From the sequence record OR455461.1: a stretch of 64,000 nucleotides of DNA. One strand, given 5' to 3'. A program made the translations under genes and the position numbers. Below, piece after piece: positions 46,063-52,756 of the stretch. Under the pieces are notes generated by a model. It did not search any database. It was not told the origin of the DNA and saw only the letters and a program-made list of their open reading frames with translations. Each line of letters starts with the position of its first letter. Position 1 is the first letter of the stretch.

Positions 46063-47617
46063 TTAATAAATATAATCTTCGATGTCTATTTCATTTTGTT
46101 TAATTGTCATATCATGGAAAGACTTCATAGAGCTTGTTACAATTGCTTGAGCTACCTGATTGACTAATAAACCAATATTTTCTATACCTAATTTGTAAGG
46201 GAGTTCTCCTGCACATTTACTACAGATATCTTCACTTGCACAATACATAGGACTTCTGAAGTTCAATACTTTCCCAATATGCTCATCTACATTTGAAGTA
46301 GTTAACAGTGTTAATTGACCTTTTCTTCCTGAATTATCTTCAAAATATCTATAAAGTAAAAGATTCGCATTATCTTTAGTTAAAGTTAATTTTAATGTAT
46401 GTTTTGTTCTACAATCAGAACCTTGTTTATCTAATACAGTTGTTTGGAAAGCAGACATAAGTTTTTTAGCTTGATCATTTTATTATCTATATTTTATTAT
46501 AGATTAGACTATATCTTATGAATTTAATCATTTCTATATTTAGTCGTTGAACAACTTAATAAAGTTGATGCTAGTTAGTTTTTAACATTCTAGCAATTAA
46601 TAGAATTTATTGTGAGCATCTAATTTACCCACCTTCTTGAGTCATTTATGTTAATCTATATTAATTTAATATAGATCAGACTATATCAAAAACTCTTTAT
46701 GAGTTTAATTATATTTAGTCGTTGAACAATCATTCTGATTGATGCTGATTAAGTTTATCTCTTCTCAGCAATTAATAATTTTTCTATTATTACATTACTA
46801 TAATAAAGGGCATTCATATACCTAAAGCACGTCCAGCTGAACCAGCAGTCATAATGTCTCCAAACATATATAGTTCTTCTGGATCAATTCCATCAGCTAA
46901 AGAACTCTTAGCAATACGTATTTTACTAGGATCAGCGAAGTTTTTATTTGCTCCACGTATTAATGCAGTTAACTTGAAGTTATTTCCAAAACTACCTCTT
47001 GATCCACTATCATAAATATCAAGGTCTGCTAAACCTTCTAATTCTTCTTTACTTAACTTAATTAATTCTTTTTCAATAGCACTAATAGCATTCAATTCTT
47101 CACCAGGAGTATTTAATGCTTTACCATATTTCTCTAGTAATTCTTCTTTCTTTTGTTTAACTTTATCAGGAGCAACCATCATTGTAGTTGTCAAACTAGA
47201 ATTAATAAATCCTGCTATAGAGAAACCAAGCCATTGAAGTTTATCAATATACATATTCATATCTTTAGTTGTAATAACATCATTAAGTAATAAACTAGAT
47301 AACTCAGATTGTAGATTTCCTACACCTGATCCTCCCATATCTTTATTCATATATCCTATAATAGGTCCTATTTTATTGTCTAATATAAATTTATTAAATA
47401 TATATCTTCCAACTGTTGTTCTTTCATCTTTACTATTATAAACTAAATCTTTTTTAAGTTTAAATCTATCGCTAGGATTAAACATTGGTTGTGTATTTTG
47501 TCTAAATGCAAATAATTCTTTAAGTTTATCAAGAGTAATATCTTCTTTTTTTATACTTAATAAAGTTGATACTTCTTTCTCAGATAAATCTTTTTTATCA
47601 TAAGTCATATTAACCAA
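46063..47617 (-). CDS. Virion RNA polymerase beta'-like C-terminal subunit (phiKZ gp80-like), spliced, 408 aa
   Basis: Exons 47617-46820, 46642-46627 and 46475-46063 total 1227 nt in frame. The join gives GRALG-TQEGGY-QAKKL (bridge-helix equivalent); also TTVGRYIFN and DSGSRG. Confidence 0.85.
46476..46626 (-). mobile_element. Group I intron (151 nt, ORF-less) in beta'
   Basis: Exon end GUGGGU pairs with IGS GCUCAC; P4 UGCUAG/CUAGCA, P7 GACUA/UAGUC, terminal G; splicing rebuilds a TAT codon. Confidence 0.9.
46643..46819 (-). mobile_element. Group I intron (177 nt, ORF-less) in beta'
   Basis: P1 GGUAU/AUGCC with U.G, P4 UGCUGA/UCAGCA, R GUUCAACGACUA, S GAUAUAGUCU, terminal G. Confidence 0.9.
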
Positions 47618-47650
47618 TTTAATTTCACTTCTTTCATATATTATTTGTAA

Positions 47651-50900: not shown

Positions 50901-52756
50901 TCATTAATTAAATCTACTAGAGGTTATACTGATGGCGGTAAAAAAGATGCTAATGATACATCTCTATACACTCCATTAGAATTACTTAACCCTTATTCTA
51001 GTAGACATGCCGATAATCAAACATGGATAGTCGGCTTAAAAACTATTTAATTGCTGAAATTACTTTAAAGTTAATCAGCATCAATCAAATTGTTCAACGA
51101 CTAAATAATAGATACTAATTATATAATTAGTAATGATATAGTCTCAACTATGTATAAAGTATATAGAAATAAGATAATGTCTCCACGTATTGGAATGACT
51201 GGTATATGAATGCCCTTTATTATAGTAATATAATAATAGAAAAATCTTTAATTGCTGAGAAAATAATAATTAAGTTAATCAGCATCAATCAAATTGTTCA
51301 ACGACTAAATAAGATTATACCTAAACGGTATTTGATATAGTCTCAGCTTTAATTTATTTTAAAGAAGTTCATTAAGAACTAATACACAATAAACAAAGTG
51401 TATTAAGATAATCTGACTCAAGCCAAGCACGTAATTCCAACAAAAACTAATAGTAAACCATTAGTTGGATCTGGTGTTGATAAATCTTTAGCTTATCAAT
51501 TATCAGATACATTTGCTTTTAAAGCTAAACAAGATGGTAAAGTATTAAAAATTAACGAGAAAACTGGTTTAATGACAGTAGAATATATCAATGGTGAAAA
51601 AGATATTGTTGATATATCTGAAAAATTAGCCAAAAACTCTAACTCAGGTTTTTATCAATCTAATAAACTTGATCCACAATTTAATGTAGATGACACTTTT
51701 AATAAAGGTCAAATACTTGCTAAAAATAATAATTTCTTTGCTGGATCCGGTAAAGATAATGATATTCAATTTACTTCAGGTAAATTATCTAAAGTATCTG
51801 TAGCTAGCTCATATGGTATTATAAATGCCTTTCATTATAGTAATGTAATGTCAAAAAATTATTAATTGCTGAGAAATATTAAATTAATCAGCATCTCTAC
51901 ATTTATAGAGTTCAACGACTAAATATGATTATTCATTAATACTAATGAATTTGATATAGTCTAATCTATTATAAAAATATAATAGCTAATATAAATGACT
52001 TATGAAGATAGTTCTATTATTTCTAGTAGTATGTCTGAAGCAATGTCTACTAAAGTTACTATGAAGAAAACAGTAAATATTCCATCAAACACAAATATTC
52101 AATATATAGTTAAAGAAGGTCAGAAAGTACGTACAGGTGATCCTTTAATGATATTTGAAACTTCATTTGATGAAGAAGGTATTGGTTCTTTATTAGATAA
52201 AATCGGTAGTGAATTTGAACAAGATATTCAAGATATAGCTAATCGAGCTGTTAGAAGTAAATATACAGGTAATATTAAAAAGATTAATATTTATTATAAT
52301 GATGATATTGAAAATATGACTGATAGTTTAGCTAAATTAGTTAATAATTACATTAAAAAATCAAATGATAAATATAAAGAATATAAATCTGGAGTTAAAA
52401 ATAATAAAGAAACTTTACCTGGTATTGATGTAGATATTGCAGCTGTAGAGAAAATTAATACAGAGAAAATTAAAGGAGAAAAAGTTGACGGAGTTCTTAT
52501 TGAAATCTTCACTGAATATGAAGATGATATGAGTGTTGGAGATAAAATTAGTTTCTACGGAGCTTGTAAAACTGTAGTTGCTGATGTAACTCCTCCAAAT
52601 GAATCACCTTATTCTGAATATAGATCTGATGAAGAAGTTGAAGCTGTATTCTCTCCATTAAGTATTGTCTCTCGTATGACAGTTGATATTTATATGATGT
52701 TATTCACAAATAAAGCTTTAATAGAATTAAAACGTAAAGTAAAAGATATGGTATAA
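47934..52756 (+). CDS. Virion RNA polymerase beta-like subunit (phiKZ gp178-like), spliced, 1421 aa
   Basis: Exons 47934-51014, 51180-51203, 51416-51817 and 51998-52756 total 4266 nt in frame. Joins give SRHAD-SPRIGMTG-TQAKHVIP and SSYG-TYEDS; also LNGGKKVLTKQL, GDKISF and SRMT. Confidence 0.88.
51015..51179 (+). mobile_element. Group I intron (165 nt, ORF-less) in beta
   Basis: Exon end GCCGAU pairs with IGS GUCGGC; core P4, R and S elements present; terminal G. Confidence 0.9.
51204..51415 (+). mobile_element. Group I intron (212 nt, ORF-less) in beta
   Basis: P1 GGUAU/AUGCC; 5' part nearly identical to intron 46643-46819; core elements and terminal G present. Confidence 0.9.
51818..51997 (+). 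mobile_element. Group I intron (180 nt, ORF-less) in beta
   Basis: P1 GGUAUU/AAUGCC; AAUUGCUGAG, GUUCAACGACUAAAU, GAUAUAGUCU; terminal G. Confidence 0.9.

Follow-up and report, generated by a model that had tools for sequence, protein, structure and literature searches.

A guide segment shared by group I introns at one 10-base site in two RNA polymerase genes of Staphylococcus jumbo phage AH12 points to transfer between genes

How group I introns come to occupy new sites has long been an open question. In phages, these introns lie in conserved motifs of essential genes, with several in one gene, as in Staphylococcus phage Twort and Bacillus phages SPO1, SP82, and AR9 (Korn et al.), and the introns described here are placed in the same way. 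Endonuclease-driven homing, known from T4 td, SPO1, and others, is also paralleled here, as some members of the present family bear HNH endonucleases and the presence or absence of introns at the same site among relatives fits allelic exchange. For movement to a different site, the reverse-splicing route is without direct experimental evidence, its best support being related rDNA introns at two sites (PMC3984707). In those nuclear rDNA group I introns (Roman and Woodson; Bhattacharya et al. 2005, as presented in PMC3984707), related introns occupy non-allelic sites whose 4–6 nt flanks match the guide; the same is true of the phage introns, and the case is circumstantial in both. Here, we examined introns in two virion RNA polymerase genes of phage AH12, within a stretch of 64,000 nt (the window).

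Introns of the RNA polymerase genes and their family

Boundaries of the window introns were set from alignment with S6 and SA1, phages whose beta and beta′ genes are uninterrupted, and those of AH12 introns genome-wide from alignment to intron-less S6 with manual curation. Boundary calling from open reading frames and P1 pairing was dropped as too noisy. The resulting features are collected in Table 1. An earlier, sequence-only reading of the window had flagged three introns (beta′ intron a and beta introns 2 and 3), and its coordinates were exact when set against the intron-less alleles of S6 and SA1. By the same boundaries, all five window introns are preceded by T and end in G. The beta′ gene is colinear with the 1227-nt intron-less genes of S6 and SA1, and the beta gene with a 4254-nt uninterrupted gene in S6. 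A Pfam search did not recognize the divergent AH12 subunits, which were identified from weak PDB sequence matches, conserved motifs, and GenBank annotation. The beta′ protein has a weak but specific match to the bacterial beta′ bridge-helix region, and its counterparts are labeled beta′ in the GenBank records of PB50 and Machias; the beta protein weakly matches bacterial and plastid beta. In automatic annotation of these phage genomes, the RNA polymerase, DNA polymerase, gyrase, and other genes are cut into "hypothetical" pieces.

Table 1. Features of the intron-bearing RNA polymerase genes; a slash within a sequence marks the insertion point
Feature	Window position	Strand	Details
Window			Staphylococcus jumbo phage AH12, OR455461.1 (100% match); window position = record position - 186000
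Virion RNA polymerase beta′ (mid-domain) gene	46063..47617	-	Three exons: 47617-46820, 46642-46627, 46475-46063
beta′ intron a	46643-46819	-	177 nt; group I, no ORF; interrupts GGT/ACTCAAG; exact gap versus S6, SA1, and PB50
beta′ intron a, P1 loop and internal guide	46809..46819	-	Intron nt 1-11, ATATGAATGCC
beta′ intron a, P2 hairpin	46782..46808	-	Loop AGUAAU; minimum-free-energy fold; near-identical in beta intron 2
Exon between beta′ introns a and b	46627-46642	-	16 nt; alignment and direct sequence reading
beta′ intron b	46476-46626	-	151 nt; belongs to the family, guide distinct (GCTCAC paired with GTGGGT)
Virion RNA polymerase beta gene	47934..52756	+	Four exons
beta intron 1	51015-51179	+	165 nt; interrupts GCCGAT/TCTCC; guide GTCGGC; Rfam group I, 36.1 bits
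Exon between beta introns 1 and 2	51180-51203	+	24 nt
beta intron 2	51204-51415	+	212 nt; interrupts GGT/ACTCAAG; chimera; exact gap versus S6, SA1, and PB50; Rfam 31.5 bits
beta intron 2, guide and P2	Guide 51204-51214, P2 51215-51241	+	Common to beta′ intron a
beta intron 2, 3′ module	51344..51415	+	72 nt; P9 and two more hairpins; unrelated to beta′ intron a
beta intron 3	51818-51997	+	180 nt; interrupts GGT/ACTTATG; guide ATTATAAATGCC

Judged by their sequences, the three flagged introns are members of a miniature, mostly ORF-less group I family of 142–212 nt. We counted 31 copies in AH12 and 10–34 in six related phages, and detected none in S6, SA1, or DC4, with S6 lacking every family signature. 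Covariance model R1 overlooks members whose core an ORF interrupts, as in the beta genes of PALS_2 and MarsHill, and its count of 0 copies for PALS_2 is not strictly correct. The family architecture consists of a site-specific 5′ guide module (the P1/P10 guide, alone or together with P2), a near-invariant P3–P8 catalytic core, and a variable 3′ module (P9). Across 30 AH12 copies, P3, P4, P6, P7, and P8 had standard pairs in 96.7% of cells, against 28–48% in a control in which the partner was shifted by 1–3 columns, and both-sided changes in pairs of P3, P6, and P8 give covariation support to the P3–P8 core. P1 (GGU/AU with AUGCC) and P2 formed the minimum-free-energy fold in all three flagged introns. 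Two AH12 introns, at a GADFDGD motif, break the rule that the exon ends in T, having C(-1) opposite A.

Scores against Rfam RF00028 (36.1, 31.5, and 15.9 bits) missed the curated gathering score of 50, a shortfall explained by the small size of the introns, and a standard scan of the whole window returned zero RF00028 hits and so misses these introns; in a 1-kb search, the alignments ran end to end (E = 2e-7 and 6e-6). No endonuclease ORF lies inside the three flagged introns (177, 212, and 180 nt), which are core and hairpins throughout. HNH endonuclease genes are found in other family members, for example at AH12 record positions 135289–136836 (phrog_559, 1e-69). Exact-pattern scans of IMG/VR and JGI metagenome contigs with the 5′ module gave no match. 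Close relatives of these phages are present in indoor-metagenome runs (X1–X4). As a family marker, the P7 core motif was rejected as generic, being present in more than 119 viral contigs, giant viruses included.

One guide segment and one target in two genes

The sequence-only reading described the 5′ ends of beta′ intron a and beta intron 2 as nearly identical over ~50 nt, and placed both introns in GGT/ACTCAAG. Counted from the first intron nucleotide, identity is 41/42 nt and, over a longer stretch, 55/58 nt, and the surrounding exon identity stops exactly at those 10 nt. Identity of the two 5′ modules is 97%, where the median of all 435 AH12 intron pairs is 48%, placing the pair in the top 0.2%. 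In the whole genomes of AH12, Machias, PB50, LY01, and S6, the uninterrupted 10-mer is confined to these two gene positions. A third guide-compatible site, GGT/ACTCA (GGUACUCAUG), lies on the gyrB sense strand at record position 167671 and is vacant. The related 5′ end ascribed to beta intron 3, in GGT/ACTTATG, was also recovered, its 5′ module sharing 82% and 79% identity with those of the other two introns; its nearest 5′ relatives are in other contexts (i118928 in GGT/GCC, 90%; i11632 in GGC/GCT, 85%). The two sites are non-homologous, as proposed, since the beta′ site is in the bridge-helix region and the beta site in a conserved H-x-D-x-x-R...Q block, and we concur that homing, which acts from allele to allele, cannot put one module into two genes.

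The shared 5′ segment is made up of the guide (P1/P10) and P2, and the guide pairs with both exons. In beta′ intron a, GCC pairs with exon GGU, where the U.G pair marks the splice site, and UGAAU pairs with ACUCA of the 3′ exon to form P10. Both beta′ and beta encode Gly-Thr-Gln as GGTACTCAAG, where guide AUGAAUGCC fits P1 and P10, so that this guide is usable in either gene. The guide of beta intron 3 carries a G-to-A change that compensates for a C-to-T difference at exon position +4, and at beta intron 1 the guide likewise tracks the exon (GCGGAT with guide GTTCGC in LY01, GCCGAT with GTCGGC in AH12). Family-wide, P10 pairing was above chance (4.87 versus 3.63 of 7 pairs, p<5e-5). Similarity of P2 and the linker, with the guide removed, correlated with the context of the 5′ exon (Mantel r=0.157, p=0.013) and the 3′ exon (r=0.108, p=0.042). 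Module and context are shared across genes in further cases: exon end TTGGGT with guide GCTCAA (three genes), CCGAT with GTCG (several), and ACTGGGT (two). The enrichment for GGT/ACT that the sequence-only reading had looked to was not borne out, as the family has no overall preference for this context (4 of 31 AH12 introns); the 5′ contexts of the 31 include 14 GGT, 7 GAT, 4 AGT, and 2 GGC.

We then compared the two sites across phages. AH12, Machias, and LY01 have an intron at both the beta′ intron a and the beta intron 2 site, and seven other phages have one at neither; LY01 and S6 presence/absence calls made at 6 mismatches were discarded as false positives. PB50, which is 95–97% identical to AH12, has an intact GGTACTCAAG at both sites and retains the neighboring introns 16 and 24 nt away, and SA1 also has the 10-mer intact at both sites, indicating that the target is older than the intron. 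Because PB50 lacks at least six AH12 introns, joint loss of these two is not very improbable, and the both-or-neither pattern is based on few independent events. No co-conversion tract was visible beside the beta′ site, where Machias (filled) and PB50 (empty) differ identically from AH12. A 3-nt P2 variant occurs in one form in both LY01 introns and in the other form in both AH12 and Machias introns, so sequence was passed from one site to the other after the phages had diverged. Collectively, one guide segment at one 10-base site in two unrelated genes points to transfer between genes. By sequence comparison, the guide modules at the two sites are homologous, and must either have moved between genes more than once or have been homogenized after a move.

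Mosaic introns and the route to a second gene

The proposal that a single intron lineage occupies both sites holds only for the 5′ module; identity is 84% in the core and 43% in the 3′ module. When left free, the core tree groups beta′ intron a with a gyrB intron, and an AU test did not reject a clade of beta′ intron a with beta intron 2 (p=0.64); the core-only alignment is too short either to group or to separate the two. The 3′ module of beta intron 2 has at most 46% identity to any other AH12 intron, and reaches 72% with its counterpart in the ORF-carrying PALS_2/MarsHill intron located 7 nt upstream. It comes from an intron lineage different from that of beta′ intron a. Between AH12 and LY01, same-site cores share 73–87% identity, below the 84–97% of the best paralog within one genome, which shows frequent intragenomic exchange. 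In LY01, beta intron 2 resembles beta′ intron a at both ends and not at the 5′ end alone. With near-identity confined to the 5′ module in AH12, a jump of the whole intron between beta′ and beta would be no more than a possibility.

The reading we prefer, and to which we give about even chances, is an RNA-guided first arrival at the second gene followed by recombination among family introns at core blocks. For the first arrival taken separately, we infer that an RNA-guided route is the most likely. An excised intron would reverse-splice into the matching site (GGUACUCAAG) of the other mRNA, the recombinant RNA would be copied to DNA, and this DNA would recombine into the genome. Family introns would afterwards recombine with each other at conserved core blocks, and the present copies would be mosaics in which only the guide end preserves the link between the sites. 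Spread by reverse splicing, which the sequence-only reading had put forward, agrees with the site matching, in that the guide pairs with both exons and P10 pairing exceeds chance. Related introns are present at non-allelic, guide-matching sites, as reverse-splicing mobility calls for. A match between exon and guide is, however, a prerequisite for the splicing of any intron and is thus expected after any insertion route, and reverse splicing itself would be the inferred part of this proposal.

The absence of a reverse transcriptase from the window was confirmed, although elsewhere the genome encodes one of retron type (record 177982–179535, 6.5 kb upstream of the window; its top match is retron RT type II-A, 1e-36). 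Retron-type reverse transcriptases normally use their own RNA as template. The gene is also found in intron-free S6, and so does not track the introns. We consider it unlikely that the family is active today as an RNA-guided mobile element, in which an exchangeable 5′ guide (~10 nt of pairing) would program reverse splicing into any matching phage transcript and the phage retron-type reverse transcriptase would make the DNA.

Alternatively, the sites may have been colonized separately by different family members, with DNA gene conversion later copying the guide and P2 between resident introns that lie 4.4 kb apart in inverted orientation and need the same guide, and no jump at all. The mosaic make-up of the introns (5′ module 97%, core 84%, 3′ module 43%), the likeness of the AH12 beta intron 2 3′ module to that of the PALS_2/MarsHill intron 7 nt upstream, the frequent exchange seen among cores (73–87% at the same site, 84–97% for the best paralog), the LY01-specific P2 variant in both LY01 introns, and an annotated RecA-like recombinase in the genome all agree with it. 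The conversion tract would, however, need to start within 3 nt of exon identity on one side, and the two-ended resemblance of the LY01 introns exceeds a copied guide. Nor does this account explain how a family member first entered the beta site, which merely moves the question back, and we hold it to be possible but rather less than probable. Chance or convergence, by which a shared exon sequence selects a shared guide in unrelated introns, could account for the 8–11 nt or so of guide that the exons constrain. It is already contradicted by identity that continues ~27 nt into P2, unpaired with the exons, and the rank of the pair in the top 0.2% of 435, together with the lineage-specific P2 variant in both LY01 copies, leaves it very improbable.

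The beta site might instead have suffered a double-strand break, by chance or through a homing endonuclease of relaxed specificity, and been repaired from the beta′ intron through the GGT and ACTCAAG microhomologies, an illegitimate repair like that described for phage T4 introns whose exon homology is limited. Both limited-homology repair and relaxed specificity of endonucleases are known ectopic routes (PMC3984707), some family members carry HNH endonuclease genes, and the ORF-carrying intron 7 nt from the beta intron 2 site in PALS_2 and MarsHill makes nearby breaks plausible. Insertion of this kind would have had just 3 + 7 nt of homology to work with, and the three flagged introns are without an ORF. 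The shared context stops where guide pairing stops, whereas endonuclease sites are usually longer, and ~31 sites per genome would call for many specificities; we regard such an origin as distinctly unlikely.

Comparison with known systems

In the literature we searched, we found no description of a 31-copy miniature family with 0–34 copies among sister phages and recurrent guide modules. It is in these same respects, 31 copies of one family in AH12, 0–34 among its sisters, and guides recurring across genes, that AH12 differs from Twort, SPO1, SP82, and AR9. Endonuclease-driven homing targets the same site in another genome, not another gene, and the flagged introns have no ORF with which to drive it.

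Several features make these phages useful for further work. Machias, with both sites filled, and PB50, with both empty, differ from AH12 in the same way next to the beta′ site and provide a natural contrast, about 31 further family members serve as replicates, and the reverse transcriptase gene is available for knock-out. If the family were an active RNA-guided element, it would be the first natural system with group I reverse-splicing mobility at scale that could be followed in the laboratory. Compared with the nuclear rDNA introns as they are presented in PMC3984707, the AH12 targets are viral protein-coding mRNAs, the match includes P10, near-isogenic filled and empty phages exist, and a reverse transcriptase gene is in the genome. 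With a defined 10-nt target in two unrelated essential genes, the AH12 group offers a cleaner natural case.

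Introns in the virion RNA polymerase genes

The record of Staphylococcus phage AH12 (OR455461.1, 264,661 bp) matched the window at 100% identity; subtracting 186000 from a record position gives the window position. We reassembled its genome from annotated stretches and used S6, PB50, Machias, and LY01 as whole genomes; labels beginning with L denote individual sequence stretches. The relatives of AH12 are other Staphylococcus jumbo phages: PB50 and Machias, 95-97% identical to it across the window region, and LY01, S6, SA1, PALS_2, DC4, MarsHill, and Madawaska, at about 80%. Intron-interrupted genes were reported in three of these phages by Korn et al., who did not analyse the introns themselves. 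S6 and SA1 have uninterrupted versions of both genes (beta, 4254 nt; beta′, 1227 nt), and intron boundaries were taken as the gaps left when these genes were aligned to the window.

Introns of the beta′ and beta genes in window coordinates, bounded by alignment to S6 and SA1
Intron	Position	Strand	Adjacent exon
Beta′ intron a (beta′-a)	46643-46819	minus	
Beta′ intron b (beta′-b)	46476-46626	minus	16-nt exon separates it from beta′-a
Beta intron 1 (beta-1)	51015-51179		24-nt exon next
Beta intron 2 (beta-2)	51204-51415		
Beta intron 3 (beta-3)	51818-51997		

The coordinates that the sequence-only reading had proposed for beta′-a, beta-2, and beta-3 proved exact, and its account of their contexts also held. 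Counted from the 5′ end, beta′-a and beta-2 match at 41 of 42 nt and at 55 of 58, and both interrupt GGT/ACTCAAG (the slash marks the insertion point), with exon identity limited to those 10 nt; beta-3 sits at GGT/ACTTATG. The bridge-helix region holds the beta′ site and the conserved H-x-D-x-x-R...Q block the beta site, and the two positions are therefore unrelated, as had been claimed. Beta′ and beta are transcribed divergently, and the very A+T-rich spacer separating them (window 47618-47933) carries early-promoter motifs that resemble TATATTAT, a type described by Korn et al., as well as a palindrome near 47822-47848. The window also holds two tRNA-like genes (44178-44266 and 44625-44696, minus), both passing the Rfam tRNA threshold. 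For each, ARAGORN reports an anticodon of two bases and assigns no amino acid; the anticodon arm of one contains a 14-nt insert, and their Machias counterparts are annotated as pseudo tRNA-Asn.

AH12 contains 31 instances of the core motif GTTCAACGACTAAAT with GATATAGTC 20-40 nt further on, including five inside the window, and both junctions could be fixed for all 31 introns. An alignment of 30 cores supports P3, P4, P6, P7, P8, and the P3/P7 pseudoknot, with standard pairs in 96.7% of cells and both-side changes in P3, P6, and P8; a control with the partner slid by 1-3 columns gave pairing in 28-48% of cells. The Rfam group I model did not detect the introns in a whole-window scan, and its end-to-end alignments in a 1-kb search (36.1, 31.5, and 15.9 bits) fell short of the gathering score, 50. 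Members of the family are small group I introns, 142-212 nt long. In one member (AH12 record 135289-136836), a 447-aa HNH endonuclease gene (L004:37343-38686) splits the core, separating P6 from P7.

A covariance model of the core found 31 copies in AH12, 30 in Machias, 34 in LY01, 22 in PB50, 12 in Madawaska, and 10 in MarsHill, and detected none in S6, SA1, PALS_2, and DC4. The model misses ORF-split relatives, of which PALS_2 has at least one; S6 carries no family signature whatsoever. At the blastn level, and within the phage collection, the family is restricted to the six Staphylococcus phages with copies by the model. The P7 motif by itself is generic among viral group I introns: with its partner strand, it occurs on more than 119 IMG/VR viral contigs (L076-L155), frequently in multiple copies on one contig; among them are giant-virus bins and phage contigs of 200-400 kb. 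Separately, the S6 homologue of an AH12 gene at 153.4-156.0 kb, probably encoding DNA polymerase, is interrupted (S6 record about 191600-193534, L026) by an insert of about 2 kb outside the AH12 family.

Guide pairing and insertion contexts

In minimum-free-energy folds of beta′-a, beta-2, and beta-3, P1 pairs GGU/AU with AUGCC, placing a U.G at the splice site, and P2 follows directly. Nucleotides 5′ of GCC could pair with the 3′ exon as P10, predicted as UGAAU with ACUCA in beta′-a and beta-2 and as UAUAAAU with ACUUAUG in beta-3, each with a C.A mismatch at +2. The C-to-T difference of beta-3 from the other two at exon +4 is matched by a G-to-A change in its guide. Across the family, P10 pairing with the intron's own 3′ exon averaged 4.87/7 versus 3.63 +/- 0.18 with reassigned exons (p<5e-5). 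For beta-1, guide and exon are GTCGGC and GCCGAT in AH12, and GTTCGC and GCGGAT in LY01.

The expectation that GGT/ACT would be enriched family-wide failed when contexts were tabulated: only 4 of 31 AH12 introns sit there, and the context is therefore specific to the guide, not to the family. Among the 31, 5′ exons end in GGT (14), GAT (7), AGT (4), or GGC (2). The same pattern recurs in different genes for TTGGGT/ with guide GCTCAA, for CCGAT/ with guide GTCG, and for ACTGGGT/. With the guide removed, similarity in the rest of the 5′ module still tracked exon context: Mantel tests gave r=0.157 against the 5′ exon (p=0.013) and r=0.108 against the 3′ exon (p=0.042). In another beta′ gene (AH12 record, L002:11381-11725, minus), the codons for a GADFDGD catalytic motif have a family intron on either side, and both introns have a 5′ exon ending in C opposite a guide A, a C.A wobble replacing the usual U.G. 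A third beta′-like gene has a 6-nt exon, GCCGAT, between two introns within its ADYDGD motif (AH12 record 118835-118840, minus).

Empty sites and mosaic introns

The 10-mer target predates the arrival of the introns. It is intact at both sites in SA1 and in beta′ of S6, where beta has GGTACCCAAG; in PB50, GGTACTCAAG is uninterrupted at both sites, although the nearby introns beta′-b (at a distance of 16 nt) and beta-1 (24 nt) are retained. AH12, Machias, and LY01 have introns at both sites and the other seven phages at neither, a coupling that is suggestive but not strong, because PB50 lacks at least six AH12 introns. Beside the beta′ site, Machias (filled) and PB50 (empty) differ from AH12 in the same way, which leaves no visible co-conversion tract at that site. 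A third site compatible with the beta′-a guide, GGT/ACTCA on the gyrB sense strand (AH12 record 167671, minus; codons Gly-Thr-His; L005), is vacant.

The proposal of one intron lineage stood only for the guide end. Between beta′-a and beta-2, the 5′ modules are homologous (97% identity, top 0.2% of 435 pairs), the cores are 84% identical (86th percentile), and the 3′ modules are 43% identical (6th percentile). The core nearest to beta′-a is that of a gyrB intron (93%), with which it pairs (SH-aLRT support 88) in an unresolved core-only tree; an AU test did not reject a beta′-a plus beta-2 clade (p=0.64), so the core gives evidence neither for nor against a common lineage. Compared with other AH12 introns, the 72-nt 3′ module of AH12 beta-2 reaches no more than 46% identity; it is 72% identical, at equal length, to that of an ORF-carrying intron of 1300 nt found in PALS_2 and MarsHill. 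This relative, missed by the covariance model, lies at GGGAT/GACCGGT, 7 nt upstream of the beta-2 site (L073:6018-7317; L075:6018-7319). LY01 beta-2 joins a beta′-a-like 5′ module and a beta′-a-like 3′ end around a different core. Same-site cores are 73-87% identical between AH12 and LY01, whereas the best paralogue inside one genome reaches 84-97%. From this mosaicism and within-genome similarity, we conclude that the introns recombine with one another and that only the guide end is tied to the site.

Transfer between the two genes

The shared guide module is a correct observation and not due to chance: beta′ and beta share a homologous module matched to a pre-existing 10-mer, and sequence transfer between the genes is well supported. 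This evidence covers the guide module and falls short of whole-intron transfer. RNA-guided insertion, which would place related modules at guide-matched sites, is the most economical reading; conversion between resident introns or break-induced illegitimate repair may instead be responsible. P2 reads ...ATAATATACG... in both LY01 introns and ...ATAATAATAG... in both AH12 and both Machias introns, three adjacent differences that sort the copies by genome, not site; the divergence of the phages was therefore followed by movement of sequence between the two sites. That exchange could represent a fresh transfer in each lineage or conversion between resident copies.

The window holds no reverse transcriptase, as the sequence-only reading had noted. 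The search that it suggested elsewhere in the genome located one 6.5 kb before the window start (AH12 record 177982-179535, minus; L016:1258-2811), preceded by a non-coding stretch of about 1.1 kb. It is retron-type, with retron RT type II-A as best match (1e-36), and Korn et al. list a homologue with unknown function. The gene is conserved in AH12, PB50, Machias, LY01, and intron-free S6, and so does not track the introns. According to the review PMC3984707, mobility by reverse splicing still lacks direct evidence, and phages of the AH12 group would offer a good system for testing it.
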